Below, one piece after another: positions 23,122-43,440 of a stretch of 64,000 nt of DNA. The notes beneath the pieces were generated by a model, which saw only the letters and a list, made by a program, of their open reading frames with translations, searched no databases and was not told the origin of the DNA. The position numbers and the translations under genes were made by a program. Within the stretch, counting starts at the first letter, position 1. Each line of letters opens with the position of its first letter. Origin of the DNA: Trichoplax adhaerens (taxonomy: Eukaryota > Animalia > Placozoa); assembly GCF_000150275.1 (NCBI RefSeq), contig NW_002060951.1:2662580-2726579 (forward strand), read 5' to 3'.

Positions 23122-24727
23122 TCATAAAGTCGAATTCCACATCATTTCCTTAAATTTTTTCAAGTTAATTTGGGTTATTACTTGGATAAGTGATCGATTT
23201 GAACGATTATCCCAGTCAATAACAACCTGGCCTTTGGTTAATCTTCCATCTGTTTCAACACTGGCCGCAACTTCTACATAGTCCTTTACTATTGTTGGAT
23301 CTAACACAGTTGCTACCGCGACGGCATCACTTGATGTATATCCTTTAGGAGATTCGTTTCTCCAATTGTCTAGGACATTAGCCAGTATATTGCGAGTAAA
23401 TTGACTTTTTTTGGTCCCTTGACAAAACCATTTCTTTGTAACCCAATCCCAGGGTAGATAGCTAGCTAAAGCACTTTCCCAAGGTACAATACGGGTGGTG
23501 CAGACATCAGGAAATGTTTCTAGGACAACGTTTGCAGCTTCCGGATCGGCATAAAAGTTGAATTCAGCGGCTGTGGTAATGTTACCCTTACCTAAAAGAA
23601 ATACTGTAGATAAGTACTAACAAGATTTTTTTTGGTGTTAGATCATTTAATTTAATAATGTAACATCACGGTCATATTTACTTAACTTTACTCCGACTGT
23701 CCATGCAAGAACAGTCGAAGCACATAGTAATCACTATGTACTTTGCTATCCGAAAGTTGGAAACGCAAATAAACACGCCGTACGTACAATAGCGATTGTG
23801 ATGATACTGTATTGCACACCCGTATACGAGCTCGTACATGTACAATAATTTAGTATTAATTAATAGATTGATAATTGACAGCCCTAACATATTGTAGACA
23901 TAATATAATGTATTGGATTTGACAATACAGTACAGTATATTGGAGCTACCATTGGGCATTGGCAGATATTATTTCTAACAAGGGTAATCCACGCATTAGT
24001 CTTAAGGCAGAAACAATTCATGATCAGTAGGTCCAAAACGTCATTAGGGTTTCTTAATTGCAGTAATGATCACGAAATATTCAATTTCAAGGGGCTGACG
24101 TTATATTAATAGCATACCTTGATAATTTCCTCCCATTATGGTCAAGTCTTTGACTTTACTCGGAAATGTGGGATCAAGTCTGCATGCTAAGGCAAGGTTA
24201 GTCAGTGGTCCAATCATAATCAAACTTACTTTATTCCTATTCTGATTAATTAAATTGATCATAGCATGGACAGCATGGTCTTCTCGTAGTACTTTGTCTT
24301 TCCATTCTGGGTTATCATTCCTTTTTTTGATATCACCTAATCCGTCGGTCCCGTGAAAAGGAGGCGCATGGACGTGTTGTGTAACCAATGGATGATCAGC
24401 TCCTGCGAAGACTGGAATATCGTCGCGCTCGCAAATTTCCAGAACGTAGGCTACATTCTTTACAACTTGGTCGACTCTGATATTACCGTTAACACATGTT
24501 ATACCCAACAATTTCGATGTACGAAATGCGGATAATGCAAGTATAATTGCATTTGCATCATCAATACCACAATCGACATCCATGAGTAAAAGATTTTCAC
24601 TTTGTTTATTCTCTGCAATATTCGAATATTTAGCGTGGGCCAATGTTGACAATGTCTGCTGAACATTACAATATCGGCTAACAACTCTTTTGCTTAGAAG
24701 ATTACCAAAACATCGCATAAAAGACAT
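23122..24727 (-). CDS. Nucleoside hydrolase paralog A (IUNH family), ~359 aa, with a probable mitochondrial presequence
   Basis: Exons 24727-24118 and 23591-23122 (1080 nt, in frame). Motifs DVDCGIDD, VNGN, FHGTDGLGD, GPLTNLA, MGGNYQG^KGN, AEFNFYADPEAA, SSDAVA. Confidence 0.93.
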
Positions 24728-25273: not shown

Positions 25274-26474
25274 ATGTCAGAAATTGAAACATTGATTGCT
25301 GGAAAAACTTTGCTCTTGGATACCGATGCCGGTATTGATGATGCTCATGCTCTAATGGTTGCATTAACTCATGATAATTGCCGTGAGATTGTTGGTATTA
25401 CATGTACTTACGGCAACTGTTTAGTCGATCAAGTTGTTAAAAATGTTAGCTATATTTTAGAGTGGTATGATCGAAAGATTCCAGTATATAAAGGAGCACA
25501 AGCATCCCTAATGCGGACATACGAAGATTTAGCTTTTCATGGCCTTGATGGTCTTGGCGATATTGAATATCGTTGTGATAACAAGGAATGGATAGATAGT
25601 TTGTTGCAATCAGAGCATGCCGCAATAGCTATGATTAATTTAAGTAAAAAATACGAAAAAGAAATCACTTTAGTAGCTATTGGACCATTGACGAATCTTG
25701 CATTAGCATGCAGGATTGATGGGAATTTCCCTTCAAGACTGAAGGAATTGATTGTTATGGGAGGTAGCCATACAGGTAGGAGATATTGTGCATGCCCACA
25801 GTACTATAACATTTATACCCCAGAATAACTCTGAGTAGATCGTCATATGTTTGGTTAGCTAACCTAACTTAGATAATATAATTATTCCTGCAACTTTCTC
25901 CGGTTAATGGACTAATAATTATAATTAATATACTGTAGTCATAATTAATTAATTTGAAAACTTTGTTCTGACTTAAATTTTAGCTATGGGTAACGCTACA
26001 TCAACGGGAGAATTTAACTTTGTCGTCGATCCGGAGGCGGCTGCCATAGTTTTAGATGAATTTCCAAAATCCTGTCCCGTTAAGATTGTACCTTTAGAAG
26101 TTACTCATGCTTGTAGCATCGAATGGGATTGGATGTACGACACATGGCTTAAACAAGATTCCCCAAAAGCTACATTGAATCGAGATATGACGAAAAACCT
26201 ACTGAAAAAAATTAAATCTGGGATACCGGAGGGTTATCCAGCCTGGGATGTGCTAGCTGTTGCTACGGCCTTGCAACCAAATTTTATTCGTGATAGTTTC
26301 AAGACCTTTATGACCGTGGAACTTCATGGCAGCAGGACGAGAGGACAAGCTGTTATAGATCGAAGGATGAAATGTGATTACCCAGTTGAAGTAATTACAA
26401 AAATTGATAGGGAATTGCTACGAGAAATGTTATATAAATCGACCATGTCAATGGAAAGTCATGTTAGCTCATAG
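25274..26474 (+). CDS. Nucleoside hydrolase paralog B (IUNH family), ~330 aa
   Basis: Exons 25274-25775 and 25984-26474 (993 nt). DTDAGIDD, TYGN, FHGLDGLGD, GPLTNLA, GEFNFVVDPEAA, PAWDVLA. Confidence 0.93.
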
Positions 26475-26896
26475 TAATGACTTGACTAATTAATGAAGAG
26501 CCACGCTAAAATATTTTTGATCATACAATACACAATCGAACCCATCTTACACCTGTCAATGTGAAGTAAAATAGATCTTCGGATGATAATTAACATTACC
26601 TCATTTACCTGCGGCAAACTTCTCGATTTGTAAATACCTATTCTTTTAAGTGTAAAATTTCGTAAATAAGATGCACTCTCGTAGGCGTAAGGATGACTCC
26701 TCTTTTATGTACGTTTATAAAATATGTGTAATTTTGGAGTTACAATCTTGTAATCATCATTAGGGACAGTTCCTGTAACAATTTGACTTGTCTTATAACT
26801 TTTAGTAATTCTTAGATTGTTATCTTGATAACATGTAATAAAATTAAAAATCTTAGTTTATACTCCATTGCACATTTTAACTAATTTAATACCTGC

Positions 26897-27254
26897 TGTA
26901 ATAATATCTTCTTTAAGTAGCGTAAAGTAGTTTAAGCTAGACGATGATAGAAGGTATAAAGGATTTTATTGAGATATAGTTATAGGCTAACAATGATATG
27001 GTTGTTATAGATAAGGTATTTGAGATAGCAGGAACGTAGGAACTGACTAACGAGTTAGCTTACAAGGGTATTTATAGGTTTTAGATGAGATTGAGATAAT
27101 GTCTTTATATGTATAGCATGTCGTCTATATGTCGTCATCATGTCCGTGTGTTATGAATGTAATGCAATACAGTACTTAAATGGTATATGATAAGTATTCG
27201 TATATTAGGATATTACTATACTAGGCATCTTCTATATAAGATCACAATGTTACA
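26897..27254 (-). mobile_element. Solo LTR, family A (358 bp)
   Basis: TG...CA termini, near-identical to 5129-5486, flanked by CCTGC (26892-26896) and CCTGT (27255-27259), a 5-bp TSD with one mismatch. Confidence 0.88.
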
Positions 27255-27292
27255 CCTGTATTATGTATTCAGTTTTGCTTATATTATTGTTA

Positions 27293-27452
27293 CTAGTGCA
27301 AACTCCCGTCGCTTTGCTGACGGTTTACGATAATGTGCTCATTTAACAGATAGTATTACCATTTGTCGTAGACCTGTCAGAGGTTCAGTAACTTTATACC
27401 GTATAGTATTACCATTTGATAGACCAGTCAGAGGTTCAGTAACTTTATACCG
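27293..27452 (-). mobile_element. Helitron 3'-terminal fragment, copy 2, with an internal ~50-bp tandem duplication
   Basis: Minus strand CCGTC-agcaaagc-GACGG hairpin, 9 nt, CTAG, T. The block atagtattaccatttg...gaggttcagtaactttataccg occurs twice. Confidence 0.7.
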
Positions 27453-28435
27453 TGTAAACAACCTGCTATCTGAGTTTATTCGACCGAAGATAGTCTATGA
27501 TGCTACAATTTATAACGGAACACTCCCCACGTCCTTCAATTCATGAATGTGTGATTTAGCGGAGTTTTGATTGACCTTCGGTCGATTACCTTCTTACAAA
27601 GTGCTCTTATATGGAGATAAACTTAGGGTTACGGAAGGTGCATAATAAGCAATTGCGGTAAATTGCAGCTATCCCTAATGATGGTCACAGGACTGTGTAA
27701 CTACCAGCTACTGTATTCATCAAGTGCGGTACTGTCGTTACAAGATTGTACTGTACATATTTTGTTAATGTTTTTAAACTTTTCAAGTGAAACGAAGTAT
27801 TGTAGATGAAGATAATCGATTTCTTATAATTATAAATAAATATGATATCTAATTGGTGAACCTTTTCAATCTGTTGGATACCAGATGCATTAAGTATGAT
27901 ATTTTAAATTGTTATATAAGATGGATTTTCAACAATTTAAGCCTGTTGCATTTGCAATGAATTTATTACGGTTTCGGTCTATTCGGATTTACTGTACTGT
28001 AGCGCTTTCCATAACTTTTGCTGTTAAAATCGACAGACTACGAGACCATTACATAACGTAATGGCTTAGTTGTTAGTTGAATGGGAGTCGATGTGATAAA
28101 TCATATGGTTTGATAATAATAATAATAAAAATCAGAATAAGTTCTTATTATCTAGTATTCACCTTAAATATTGTCAACTTTTTAGATACTGCTAGTAGTA
28201 CTATGTGTTCCACATTTATTAGTTTCATAACTGAAACAGCTGTTTTTATTACACTTTTATCCAATGAATTCCTCTAAATAGTATAACGGTACGGTAATTT
28301 CATTAATCAATTAATTTTTCTTGTAGCAACTGCTTTTGCGTTTCTATTTCTATTACTTGTAGAACTTTAGTGTTCGCAGATAATGCAAACTGTCCCAGTG
28401 CATCTTGTCTATTGAATTTTAGAATAAAAGCGAGA

Positions 28436-30284
28436 ATGGGTTGTCATCTTTCAAAAAAAGTCTACCGTTATCATAATGTTTCGAGTGACCCTGGTATTAA
28501 AACGTATTCACGATATGAACATCCGAAAGAAGAATTATTACCTAGTATGCTTAAATCGGATAAAAAATGGCTAATTATTGATACAGACGCTGGTATTGAT
28601 AGCGCTTTAGCGATCTTGTTGGCTCTACATCATGATGATGTGGGTAATATTCTAGCTATCACGTGCGTCAACGGAATTGTAACAGTAGATCAAGCAGTCA
28701 AAAATGTCGTATATGTTCTTAATATTTGTGATTGTGATACTATTCCAATATATAAAGGATCAGATCGACCTCTTGTTGGAGATGGATTGGCAAACGAACC
28801 CTGTTATAATGGTCAAGATGGTTTAGGTGATATTCATGATCGTTTTGATTCTAGATTGTTTTATAATAAAATCGTCAGGTCGGAGAATGCAATTAATATC
28901 ATGGTTTCACTTGCCAGCCGGTATGAAGGAAAAATTAGTTTGATTGCCTTAGGTCCATTGACTAACTTAGCTTTAGCCTGCAAAGTAAATCGAAATTTTC
29001 CTCGGCAGTTAAGAGATTTAACAATATTAGGTGGAAGGTACTGTCCAGGTACGTATCGAAACACATGCAACATATAGTTTTTCTTAGAATAGAGGGCGCG
29101 ACGTCTCTAGAGTTTTAGTCTGATTTCCTATAGTATATACTGTAGGTACAATACATAAATTAGCATTAATACGTTTTATATATTACTGTGTTCCATATAA
29201 TATATCTTAAATTTTAAAACAGATATCTTAAAAATGTACTATATTAGCCACGCTAGTTTCTATGTACACACCTCGTGTGCTCCATCGTACTTAACAAAAT
29301 TGCCTTTCATCATCAATACAGAATATCCTAGATTAACTTTATTGTTAATATATCTTGATATATAAATGATAATTCAAAATCTATTTCTTATATTTATATC
29401 GTAATAAATTCGTTCCGTGTATCTCATCTCAATTTCATGTACGTTATAGTTCTTTACTTTCTGTAAATCTTCCAATACAATTTCCTGCTTTCTATATAAT
29501 AGAATCTCACTCTAAAGTTCGTATACTGTGTGAACTTTCATCTTATACTACAGCATTTATATTATTGTCCTATTTACTACTTGTAACTATTTTTCTTTGC
29601 ACATGATTTATTTACTAGCTAATTTTCTTATTACAAAATTGACTTATCACAGTTTGTATGAGGCTATTTACTACAGGTGTATATTCATATACTCTATTTC
29701 TGTAGCATTCTTTCATGTGATTATAGGTAATACTACATGCTAGTGTGATCAATGCTGAGTCATCTAACGATTTGTGCTTGAAAAACAATTATAAAATCAA
29801 TTTGTAATTGATAGGTCTGGAAGATGCGCTAAACAGTAAAGAATCAAACTTTCTGATAGATCCAGAAGCCGCTCACATAGTGCTAAAAGAATATCCCCTT
29901 ATGTGCCCTACGCGTATCATTAATGGAGAAACAGTAGTCCATCATCCAATAAATTTCCAGTGGACAAATGATGTTTGGTTGAAGAATGATACCAAAAAAA
30001 GTGGTTTTGTTGAACAAATTGTTAGTAAAGCCTTACAATTCTATCGACGGAGAGATACTAACGGATATTATGTCTTTGATCCAACAGCAACGGCTGTTGC
30101 TATTGATCCACATATCGTCATTGGTGCTACTCAAATCAAAGTGGAAGTTAATTTGAGAGATCCTGATTGTCGAGGTCATATAGAAATTAAGTTGCAAGGC
30201 TCTGAGGAAGATGGAAATTTACTTCTTGTTCAAAACATTAACGTTGATGTGCTGAAAGACATGCTCTGGAACACAGTTAAATGA
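28436..30284 (+). CDS. Nucleoside hydrolase paralog C (~360 aa), N-terminal MGCHLSKK acylation motif, degenerate active site
   Basis: Exons 28436-29048 and 29815-30284 (1083 nt, intact frame). DTDAGIDSA, VNGIV, YNGQDGLGD, GPLTNLA, ESNFLIDPEAA, YVFDP. A splice acceptor at 28421-28422 precedes the ATG. Confidence 0.9.
29141..29552 (+). mobile_element. Possible diverged LTR-like insertion in the NH-C intron
   Basis: TGTAG...CTACA ends, TATATAAA followed by AATAAA, and short blocks (atctcaat, ttcctgct) in the same order as in the family A LTR sense strand. No TSD; an alternative end is 29675. Confidence 0.3.
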
Positions 30285-31514
30285 TAATAATAAGCCTTAT
30301 TTTACAGACTTATTTGTCTGTCTCAAACACGGTATTATTCCTAAGTAATATTTAGCATAAGTTTATTTGTTACTCGTAGTGGTATTTAATTATTACTGCA
30401 AAAGGTATAAAACACAGATTTAAGTTATTACGAATTATTAAATCGATATAATTTGTCATGGATAGAAGCAGATACATATTTGCATATAGTAGACAGGAAA
30501 ATATTTTTAGTTCCCTTAGCTTAAAGTAAGCAGGGTTTCTAAAAATACCGGTAGCACGTGCAAAATCCGTTAGCGTAAGGATGATTACTAGTGATAACTC
30601 AAATATTTCTAAAGTAATACTAAGGATATACGTAGTAATGCACCAATATTAGATGTTACAAATTATGATTAAGTAAGTGCAAGTTAATACAGTCACTGTA
30701 AAATCAATTCGAAATGCAGTAATACTAGTTGAGTCTGCATAAGAGAAAGGAATTTAGCCATATTAATGTCCCTAACTATCGAGAAATTATATATTTATCA
30801 TCTATTTAAAGTTATTAATAGTAATTTGATATATGTACTACAGTATATCATTAATTAGCCAGTCATAAAATTGCTATCACGCAATCATTTACCTCGATTC
30901 TTTATTAATAAACTTAAAAAATTAATAACCAAAACATGAACAAATTTTAAAGCAGTTATCGCCTTAGGAGAATATTAATCACGGTAGTCAACTCGGCGAT
31001 TATACAACACTTTATGCAATAGATAAAATAATATTGCTCGTCTCTAGAAACGCTCTTATAGCAAACTAATTTATGTATACAAAGATATTTAGCTGTATGT
31101 AATTTCCAATCTTAAACAGCCAATAAAATGTTCAAATCCTTTTTAGTGATTAAAAAATATCATAACAATATAAGGCTACCAATTAATTTAGACATTAACG
31201 AAGGTTTCGTAAATGACTAATTTACGTCTTCAATAATTATAATTATATTGACTTGAATTACTAAATTTAATTAGGAGCCAATAACAATGTCAAGGGGAAA
31301 AACTAAAATAATAGCTTATACTGCTTATAAATAATTAAGCCGCATTTCAAAACTACTAGGGACGAAATTAAAATTTTCCATGCGGCATATATTACATTTG
31401 ATGAACTTTCTGTATCTGCATCGATGGAAGTCAATCAACATTAAACTCACTGAAAAGTATTATGAACAAATTTTGCCATCCTCAAGTCTTTACACCAGAA
31501 GAATTTTAGATTTG

Positions 31515-40985: not shown

Positions 40986-42769
40986 CTAATTTTGTGCTGC
41001 GGTGATCATCATATTCTTAACTGCATCAATGTTGAGTTTTAATATGATTTCTAATCTTGGCGTTTGACTAGTGTCAATTTCAAGCCAATCTACAATTAAT
41101 TGACCCCGAGACAATCTACCAATTAATTCGACTTCGGCGTTCACTTTAGCACTCTTAATAATTAATTCAGGATTAAATGTTAAAGCCATCACGATAGGAT
41201 CACAAATAGCCATACCTGTGAAAAGTTTTGAACGATAAAACTTTAAATTGCTAGAAAATACTGCATGATTAAAACGACCCTTTTCACTGCGATATGTGAG
41301 CCATTGACAAACCCATTGCCAACTAACTGAGTGAAGTAATGCCGTCTCCCATGTTACAAGTCGAGTGATGCAAACAGAAGGAAATTCTTTAATAACAATA
41401 TGAGCAGCCTCTGGATCACTATAAAAATTAAATTCTGCTGATGGTGTTGTGTTACCTTTGCCTATATAGAATGTATCAAGTCTACTTAGTAGATTAATAA
41501 TAAATATTAAATTATAAATGAACTTATCTAGATACAAAGTCATTGACAATTGATAGTCGAATATGATCGTATATAGTTATATTTAGTGCAGGTGATAGGT
41601 ACAGTTCCAGAACAATAGAGATAGAAAGCGACTAATTTCAAAGAAACCAAAATCAGAAAAAGTAACACACAAAATACGACTTTGGTATATATGCATAAAA
41701 ATAAAATTTCATTTTTATATAGAAGTATACACTAGATTTCGCTGCTAAAAATTACTGATGAATTAGATAAATGATATTTCAGCGAACAATATCGAGTGAA
41801 ATATTTTATTATTTACTAATATCTTGATTTATACTGTATTTAGAAAAAATTTGCTTTCTTTATATTCACTACAGCTAATAACATAATCATGAATGATTGT
41901 GTACACTACCGTTAGATGTACACTATTCGATAACTATTGGATAAAAGTCTATTAATTATCTTACTAAATTAGTTATTTGAAAACATCGAAGGCGAGATTG
42001 TGATATAAAAATAGTAATACCACCACGAACTACAGTTAATACGTAGAAATATTACCGTTGTCTATGACTAATTTAAGTATAATGTGAGTAAGAAGCATTC
42101 TTTTAGAGCAAGGATACGCACAAAGAAAAAAATTGACTACGAATTATTAACAGATACCGATCAAGAGGATCTACAGCTATGTCGTTATGAAGATATACTC
42201 GTGTAAAATATTTTATTAACTTGTTATGTACTTTTTTGATACTTAGTAAATTAAATACTGTAACATATTCACATAATAAAAATCTTACCTTCATGATTAC
42301 CGCCCATAATAGTGATACTAGATAGTTTACTTGCGAACGTAGAATCAAGCCGCTGAGCTAAAGCAATGTTAGTCAATGGAGCTATAGATGCGATATCTAT
42401 CCTTCCTTCATAATCGTTTACTAAACGTACTAGTGTACTGATACCGTCTTCGTTTCGTAAAACTTGGTTTAAGAAAGCCTCATCGTCCTCTCGATTTGGT
42501 ATATCACCTAAACCATCTCGTCCATGAAACTCAGTGGAATAGACAGGCTTACCAAGAATAGGCTTAGCTGCACCTTTGTAAACAGGTATGTCGCTTCGAT
42601 TACATAATTTTAAGACGTAAGCGACATTTTTTACTACTTGATCGACGTGAACACTTCCTGTAACGCATGTAATAGCTAGGATGTTGACATTTTGACAAAT
42701 TGCAATCATAATCGCTTGGGAGTCATCAATACCGCAATCGGTATCGATAATGCAATAACGATCGGACAT
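40986..42769 (-). CDS. Nucleoside hydrolase paralog D (IUNH family), ~318 aa
   Basis: Exons 42769-42289 and 41461-40986 (957 nt). DTDCGIDD, FHGRDGLGD, APLTNIA, MGGNHEG^KGN, AEFNFYSDPEAA, AICDP. Confidence 0.93.
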
Positions 42770-43440
42770 TTTGCTTGAATTTTCAAACGTTAAACCATAC
42801 AAGGATCGCAGATAAATACTACTAACTACCGATTAGAAATTCATTACATCGTACTCCACTAAGTTCCTAGCAAATACGGTATACAGCTAATTACATTAAA
42901 CTGGTGATCATAGGATCAAGTATATAAAAAGTTGTCTACAAAGAGATTCGTAGAGCTATAGTCATGCACTGTTATCTATAGTAATTTTATTTTATACTGT
43001 ATATATATATATATACGATGTAAACCGATGCGAACAGTCTCAATCCCAAGTAGCTGAATACACAATGTCTTCGCTATTATACTTATAACAATACACAAAT
43101 ACAATACGCAATCTCAAAATTATGCAAGCTTTTATAAATTTTTATTGTTTTAGTCGCTATGACTAACTGTATACAACGTTATCATATAAGATAGTTTAGT
43201 TTAATAAACTGCCTTGATGAAATTGCATAATAATCGTTGAAAATCAGAAAAGTGACTGAAGGGATCGGTATCTGTCAACAGTAAACTACGGAAAGTTCAC
43301 TTAATTAGGGAAGATTTATATGGTTTACTATTATATCACCATCGATGCGGAAAAAGTCAGTGAAACCGTACATAACTACAAATGACCATAATTAAGGTAG
43401 TAACTCCACAGATTCACAATTAAGGCAAAAATTCAAAAAA

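Follow-up and report, generated by a model that had tools for sequence, protein, structure and literature searches.

Nucleoside hydrolases (NHs) carry the N-terminal fingerprint DXDXXXDD, and octacoordination of Ca2+ is characteristic of all of them (PMC10474468). Their Ca2+ ligands are Asp10, Asp15, Asp241/242 and the backbone oxygen of Thr124/126; Asn158/160 and Glu164/166 contact O5', Asp10 and Asn166/168 hold the nucleophilic water, and the base pocket is lined by Phe165/167 (PMC2898832; PMC10474468). Among family members that have departed from this scheme, XopQ keeps Ca2+, is monomeric and binds ADP-ribose, and Sde_0182 of Saccharophagus degradans, an inactive NH-like protein, keeps Ca2+ and binds ribofuranose; in the Arabidopsis NSH1-NSH2 heterocomplex, each subunit activates the other (2022 review, PMC8910321). 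Here we analyze TRIADDRAFT_59096, an annotated but unstudied two-exon gene of the placozoan Trichoplax adhaerens with a 360-residue product. The gene lies in an AT-rich window (the whole stretch of DNA analyzed, 64 kb of a 105.6-Mb genome in 1414 contigs, at 30-38% GC).

With the canonical group I NHs (Crithidia IU-NH, 1MAS/2MAS; E. coli RihA/RihB; plant NRH; C. elegans NH, 5MJ7), TRIADDRAFT_59096 shares its Pfam family, its fold, the inner-pocket residues and the GPLTN and DPEAA motifs. Unlike them, it has Ser for Asp15, has lost Asn39, the Gly-Asn loop that contacts O5' and the aromatic residue of EFN, and carries a 44-residue N-terminal extension with a predicted acylation signal. XopQ/HopQ1 resembles it in combining an NH fold with an N-terminal addition, and XopQ for its part shows no activity on common nucleosides and reuses its pocket for ADP-ribose; XopQ/HopQ1 differs in its retained Ca2+ site, absent interface beta-strands, monomeric state and nature as a secreted bacterial type III effector, and XopQ is absent from the sequence matches of TRIADDRAFT_59096 at E <= 0.001. 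Sde_0182 offers a second likeness, as an inactive NH-like module that itself still binds ribofuranose, and differs in that it keeps Ca2+, belongs to a bacterial multidomain carbohydrate-binding protein and has no lipid anchor. The pattern common to XopQ and Sde_0182, a preserved Ca2+ site with leaving-group residues lost and the interface masked or missing, is not found here. As active-type NHs are its closest relatives, the Ca2+ site is degenerate and the interface strands are present in the predicted model, TRIADDRAFT_59096 is analogous to XopQ and Sde_0182 and not a member of their groups.

We propose, with a probability of roughly 0.45, that TRIADDRAFT_59096 is a placozoan-specific NH duplicate turned membrane-tethered protein, in which hydrolysis is absent or strongly impaired and which binds a ribosyl ligand and/or a partner. 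Taken more broadly, a membrane-bound protein that is either no enzyme or a repurposed one is probable. Its ancestor would have been a cytosolic inosine-uridine-type nucleoside hydrolase, duplicated within Placozoa. After removal of the initiator Met, Gly2 would be myristoylated and Cys3 palmitoylated, and the acyl groups, together with Lys7, Lys8 and Arg11, would hold the protein at the cytoplasmic face of the membrane. With the Ca2+ site weakened and contacts to ribose and base lost, N-glycosidic hydrolysis would be abolished or greatly lowered. A ribosyl ligand and/or a partner protein may still be bound, as suggested by the retention of the inner-pocket residues and of a linker motif, so that the protein would serve as a binding, scaffolding or regulatory module and not as a bulk nucleosidase. 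An earlier note on this DNA, made from its letters, had described a membrane-tethered, repurposed NH fold. Of that description, a real gene with a degenerate site and a start that fits the acylation consensus is supported, and the gene is also expressed and maintained; the lipidation, inactivity, sensing and hetero-oligomers it added are treated conditionally here.

New regulators commonly arise as pseudoenzymes, from enzymes of metabolism. The described inactive members of the NH fold comprise only a bacterial effector and a bacterial carbohydrate-associated domain, both with the metal site kept. This list would be lengthened by an NH paralog from an animal in which the Ca2+ site is degenerate and a dual lipid anchor is predicted, a state conserved across placozoan lineages. 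Such a protein would also give nucleoside handling in Placozoa, where NH genes are expanded, one more component that can be tested. The earlier note knew of no described example, and this needs narrowing: inactive NH-fold proteins and a regulatory NH heterocomplex are described (PMC8910321). Our literature search retrieved no paper on a lipid-anchored NH or on an NH with a degenerate Ca2+ site, and none for 'nucleoside hydrolase' with 'pseudoenzyme'; the papers pairing 'nucleoside hydrolase' with 'myristoylation' concern other subjects by their titles and abstracts. A search by the accession numbers of TRIADDRAFT_59096 found no mention, and neither its gene number nor the name of the family occurs in the supplements of two papers on placozoan cell atlases. 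Other uncharacterized degenerate NH-like proteins came to light among the sequence representatives searched, namely a 666-residue tandem NH protein whose second domain lacks Asp14 and Asn39 (P0126), a C2H2 zinc-finger-NH fusion without Asp15 and HGxDG (P0267), and two NH-like proteins with single fingerprint losses (P0258, P0264); NH pseudoenzymes are therefore recurrent.

Gene, fold and active site

The gene and the motifs of its active site are laid out as follows, with residues of the NH family numbered as in the canonical enzymes.

28436-29048, + strand: exon 1, residues 1-204 and the first base of codon 205; N-terminal extension and first half of the NH domain, an open reading frame with a GT donor at 29049
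29049-29814, + strand: intron of 766 nt, GT..AG, phase 1; its joint is present in RNA-library contigs of runs X7 and X9
29815-30284, + strand: exon 2, residues 205-360 and TGA stop; second half of the NH domain
28580-28603, + strand: degenerate fingerprint DTDAGIDS (residues 49-56); Asp8, Asp10 and Asp14 kept, Asp15 replaced by Ser56
28667-28678, + strand: VNGI in place of V-x-G-N (residues 78-81); Asn39 replaced by Ile81, which is Ile in both orthologs
28808-28822, + strand: NGQDG in place of HGxDG (residues 125-129); His82 replaced by Asn125, Ser in orthologs
28952-28966, + strand: GPLTN, kept; the backbone oxygen of Thr126 is a Ca2+ ligand (PMC2898832)
29817-29849, + strand: remodeled ribose-5'-OH loop LEDALNSKESN; Gly159-Asn160 replaced by Glu-Asp and Phe167 by Ser, Glu166 and Asn168 kept
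30075-30080, + strand: Phe292-Asp293; the Ca2+ ligand Asp242 is kept and the His241 position is Phe, with FDP also in ortholog P0125

The deposited T. adhaerens protein (XP_002115017.1, B3S4I4; P0121) equals our exon model residue for residue, and a search with the exon-1 protein found its counterpart in Trichoplax sp. H2, RDD40024.1 (P0001), of 360 residues and with the same gene model; whole-protein comparisons used these full-length deposited sequences. In RNA-library runs X7 and X9, contigs cover 28486-29046 and 29813-30203 and join across the 766-nt GT..AG gap, which puts the cut at 29048/29815. Since these contigs carry the 29048>29815 joint, TRIADDRAFT_59096 is transcribed and spliced as modeled. 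The intact reading frame and splice sites claimed beforehand are confirmed by the RNA contigs and by both deposited 360-residue proteins, and spliced RNA was found where the earlier note had allowed for a lack of expression. The T. adhaerens and H2 proteins differ at a single residue, Cys203 to Tyr (codon 29042-29044); residue 203, which is His in the orthologs, is the residue inserted in the remodeled loop.

Membership of the NH family is clear in both exons. Searched separately against PF01156 (inosine-uridine nucleoside hydrolase; cut-off 34.2 bits), exon 1 scored 140 bits over profile positions 1-150 and exon 2 scored 65 bits over positions 159-295, and both exons align to solved NH structures, exon 2 to 1MAS, 1EZR and 8CTM. 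To count residues by column, P0121 was aligned with 117 homologs from fish, amphibians, invertebrates and bacteria (alignment A1). AlphaFold run on this alignment gave a model, a prediction and not a solved structure, with a mean pLDDT of 85.5 and a pTM of 0.86; pLDDT falls below 50 for residues 1-40 and to about 61 for loop residues 201-210. Compared with NH structures by Foldseek, the model reached TM scores of 0.75-0.90, with E down to 6e-26. The NH fold read from the DNA thus holds up on profile, prediction and structural comparison alike. In the model, the NH domain sits behind a disordered 40-residue N-terminus, and the beta-hairpin strands of group I interfaces are present (residues 306-316 and 327-330). 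HMMER over 1.84 billion representatives found no closer relative outside placozoan sequences.

The active site within this fold is degenerate. Asp15 is Asp in all 117 homologs and Ser56 here; Asn39 is Asn in 116 of 117 and Ile81 here. In the ribose loop, Gly159 and Asn160 are each conserved in 116 of the 117 homologs and are Glu207-Asp208 in TRIADDRAFT_59096, where the usual K-G-N has become L-E-D at residues 206-208, preceded by a one-residue insertion. The Phe167 column, between Glu166 and Asn168, is aromatic in 116/117 and is Ser215 here, giving the motif ESN (residues 214-216). The least telling change is at His82, a position that is already variable (His in 88 and Phe in 28 of the 117). 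When set against the 117 homologs, TRIADDRAFT_59096 alone replaces Asp15 by Ser, Asn39 by Ile, the Gly-Asn of the ribose loop by Glu-Asp and the EFN aromatic by Ser. We also considered His241 to Phe as a defect and rejected it, as this position varies in the subfamily (Pro in 68, Tyr in 23, Cys in 12).

These replacements can be read against the known roles of the residues. The full DXDXXXDD fingerprint is not present, and of the Ca2+ ligand set Asp10, Asp15, Thr126 O and Asp242, three of four are kept, Asp15 being Ser. Among the ribose contacts, Glu166 and Asn168 are kept, Asn160 is Asp in the remodeled loop and Asn39 is Ile. With Asp15, Asn160, Asn39 and Phe167 replaced, one bidentate metal ligand, one O5' contact, Asn39 and the base-stacking residue are therefore lost. 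The residues kept are Asp8, Asp10, Asp14, Thr126-Asn127, Glu166, Asn168 and Asp242; the general base Asp10 and the rest of the inner pocket are thereby retained. The earlier list of altered motifs (DTDAGIDS, VNGI, NGQDG, the GN lost after the intron, and ESN) proved accurate in every item, as did its loss of a Ca2+ ligand. Degeneration extends further: in a second alignment, TRIADDRAFT_59096 breaks 12 of 58 near-invariant columns, many of them radically, and changes in the C-terminal half include Trp242 to Gly, Glu317 to Asn, Gly320 to Asp and Asp330 to Lys. The same 58 columns are broken 3 times in paralog A, 6 in E and 10 in D, nearly always conservatively.

Predicted N-terminal anchor and linker

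The consensus for N-myristoylation is Met-Gly at the start, an uncharged residue 3, one of Ser, Thr, Ala, Gly, Cys or Asn at position 6 and no Pro at position 7, and Cys3 can receive palmitate. The N-termini of Src-family kinases and of G-alpha-i/o are dual-acylated; TRIADDRAFT_59096 has the same Met-Gly-Cys start, Ser6 and then basic residues, on an unrelated cargo domain and with acylation that is, in its case, predicted. The N-terminal features are the following.

28439-28459, + strand: predicted acylation signal GCHLSKK (residues 2-8); Gly2, Ser6 and Lys7/8 for N-myristoylation, Cys3 for palmitoylation
28436-28567, + strand: N-terminal extension of 44 residues, predicted disordered, absent from paralogs B and D
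28505-28570, + strand: conserved linker stretch (residues 24-45), a candidate short linear motif with 21/22 residues identical in both orthologs

The start MGCHLSKK fits the dual-acylation consensus, as do those of the orthologs, MGCHYSKK (P0002) and MGCHHST (P0122), and among the 269 proteins compared no other NH has an MGC start. Gly2, Cys3, His4 and Ser6 are kept in the orthologs, where residues 4-23 are only about half conserved. The acylation signal claimed from the DNA is therefore present at residues 1-8 and conserved, with lipidation itself a prediction from it, and the linker of about 40 residues claimed alongside it agrees with the 44-residue extension and the pLDDT below 50 over residues 1-40. 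A stop lies 45 codons upstream of ATG 28436, which is the first ATG to follow it in frame; this ATG has A at -3 and G at +4 and is annotated as the start in both the H1 and H2 genomes, and the ortholog gene calls likewise begin at MGC. DHHC palmitoyltransferase genes are present in the genome, in which the DHHC domain lies above its cut-off in at least 15 places. On this evidence from sequence, a lipid anchor at the MGC start is likely; we stop short of a firmer statement because the AG at 28421-28422 could in principle serve as acceptor for a coding exon further upstream.

Conservation and competing readings

Orthologs of exon 1 were found in P0002 (ENA) and P0122 (Logan) and one of exon 2 in P0125, encoded by the 3.6-kb contig that also carries P0002; when JGI metagenome contigs were scanned with P0002, no relative turned up. 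The identity of these sequences to TRIADDRAFT_59096 is 77-81% across the domain and about 77% for the N-terminal portion, and they have in common with it the MGCH.S start, Ser at Asp15, Ile at Asn39, FDP, and the changes Trp to Gly, Glu317 to Asn and Asp330 to Lys. Conservation of the altered motifs, which the earlier note wished to see checked, extends in Ser at Asp15, Ile at Asn39 and MGCH.S to two further placozoan lineages. The orthologs differ in having Ser at the His82 position and DTDAEIDS at the fingerprint, in which the family-invariant Gly12, kept as Gly in the window, is Glu; this could be either continuing erosion of the metal loop or a new carboxylate. Frames are intact in three placozoan lineages, with indels of single codons only. 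In run X1, which has genomic-like coverage, there are 0 substitutions in 1083 coding nt and 14 in 1815 non-coding nt around and inside the gene, a contrast with a one-sided chance of about 0.001 by our own estimate. That the orthologs share the start, the motifs, the linker and intact frames, and that X1 holds no coding difference, argues for a degenerate, MGC-starting state that is old and maintained, and not for decay.

Some observations weigh against our proposal, and each is given here with the alternative it bears on. The alternative that survives best, although we consider it unlikely, is that TRIADDRAFT_59096 is still an enzyme, a tethered hydrolase shifted to a non-standard riboside such as an NAD-derived or ADP-ribose-type compound. 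Residual or altered activity is possible because only one of the four Ca2+-ligand residues is replaced and the general base Asp10 is still in place, and Asp10, Asp14, Thr126, Glu166, Asn168 and Asp242 are invariant among the orthologs. Ser56, or the new acidic residues Glu207 and Asp208 of the ribose loop, might partly make up for the lost Asp15. XopQ, long deemed inactive, binds ADP-ribose (PMC8910321), and its cleavage of 2'cADPR is reported in a 2026 preprint's abstract. Set against continued catalysis are the Asp found at position 15 in 117/117 homologs and the Ca2+ octacoordination typical of every NH (PMC10474468), the additional replacement of the invariant fingerprint Gly12 by Glu in the orthologs, and a leaving-group pocket whose His82 position varies among the orthologs (Asn or Ser), which is not what a tuned active site looks like.

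Our proposal also depends on the membrane anchor, and a soluble pseudoenzyme is a rather more doubtful alternative; MGC would then be internal by way of an upstream exon joined near 28423, or the start would be ignored by N-myristoyltransferase (NMT). Upstream, the frame stays open over 45 codons and 28422 offers a plausible acceptor, and the X7 and X9 RNA contigs begin at 28486, 50 nt 3' of ATG 28436, and so stop short of it. Six-frame genome searches for the NMT domains PF01233 and PF02799 were blank, which does not show absence; DHHC and G-alpha domains, unlike NMT domains, were readily found by six-frame search, and the blank probably reflects a limit of the search rather than true absence. 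G-alpha MGC starts were sought as an example within the organism, and the sole first exon recovered was that of a palmitoylated Gq-like protein, MAMLCC. Against a soluble protein stand the annotated start at ATG 28436 in H1 and H2, the MGC start of both ortholog gene calls, the A at -3 and G at +4, the lack of any in-frame ATG between the upstream stop and 28436, and the preservation of Gly2, Cys3, His4 and Ser6 in a stretch that otherwise varies.

The remaining alternatives involve the paralogs. The genome holds five NH genes, four of them in the window (A, B, TRIADDRAFT_59096 and D) and one, E, on another contig.

23122-24727, - strand: paralog A (P0127), canonical motifs and a long presequence-like N-terminal extension
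25274-26474, + strand: paralog B, canonical DTDAGIDD, GN, HG and EFN
40986-42769, - strand: paralog D (TRIADDRAFT_28800, P0123), canonical fingerprint, Asn39 replaced by Ser
G000:C1413:5950128-5951247 (L003 1459-2671): paralog E (P0129), the fifth NH gene, on the other contig

Paralogs A, B, D and E all carry DxDxxxDD, GN (Ser in D) and EFN, and none begins with MG. They are 45-48% identical to TRIADDRAFT_59096 and share its division into two exons, the intron falling in the same position after GG-x4-G. In the exon-1 tree, the placozoan paralogs fall in one clade (support 88/89), and the NH expansion is therefore lineage-specific. A uniquely long stem branch for TRIADDRAFT_59096 was considered and rejected, its stem of 1.04 being similar to those of B/E (1.08) and D (0.75). 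Paralogs E and B are about 90% identical in exon 1, suggesting a recent dispersed duplication. Paralog D (42269-42802) has VTGS at the Asn39 position and is the only other one of the 117 without Asn there. Paralog A (24101-24727) has an extension of about 45 residues that is rich in basic and hydroxylated residues and resembles an organelle presequence; its ortholog P0134 has a similar N-terminal extension of different sequence.

As a special case of the membrane-tethered pseudoenzyme we favor, TRIADDRAFT_59096 might be a regulatory subunit that forms hetero-oligomers with a paralog that is active (A, B/E or D), bringing it to the membrane or modulating it there. We regard this case, drawn by analogy, as improbable. 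Its model is Arabidopsis NSH1-NSH2, paralogous NH subunits that modulate each other through documented mutual activation (PMC8910321), and the difference is that both plant subunits have the fingerprint and activity and are not membrane-tethered. Four or five paralogs from one placozoan expansion reside together here, and the predicted structure contains the beta-hairpin elements described for group I interfaces (PMC8910321). Near-invariant hairpin residues are altered, however (Glu317 to Asn, Gly320 to Asp, Asp330 to Lys), and E. coli NH paralogs form no hetero-oligomers (PMC8910321).

More speculative still is the idea of a lipid-anchored NH-fold receptor on the inner face of the membrane that would bind nucleosides or an ADP-ribose-type messenger and signal through its linker. 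The surviving ribose pocket might then do the binding and the invariant linker motif recruit partners, possibly alongside ENT nucleoside transporters; if true, an early-branching animal would possess a type of membrane-proximal nucleoside sensor not known before.

Returning to the tethered, maintained pseudoenzyme, its rate of change also tells against it. In the exon-1 tree, ortholog paths are 0.26-0.33 for the lineage of TRIADDRAFT_59096 and 0.06-0.07 for paralog D, a comparison that assumes the ortholog sources to be the same species for both genes; TRIADDRAFT_59096 would then evolve about 4-5 times faster than D, which could reflect partial relaxation. That it is a decaying duplicate, a functionless but expressed pseudogene in the making, as its longer paths and lost catalytic residues might suggest, is nonetheless very improbable given frames intact in three lineages at about 20% amino-acid divergence with in-frame indels, a retained splice and expression, the 0 coding against 14 non-coding differences in X1, and a nearly invariant linker.

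Neighboring sequence

Upstream of the gene, 26900-27480 has very high depth in all four runs compared, reaching about 85,000 in X1 and 800-900 in the RNA runs. Rfam gave no match over 26400-31000. The stretch contains an internal duplication of about 55 nt (27352-27402 and 27407-27453), and many contigs over it have breakpoints at 27291/27292, 27365 and 27402, beyond which they run on into unrelated sequence; its appearance is that of a multi-copy repeat or mobile element.

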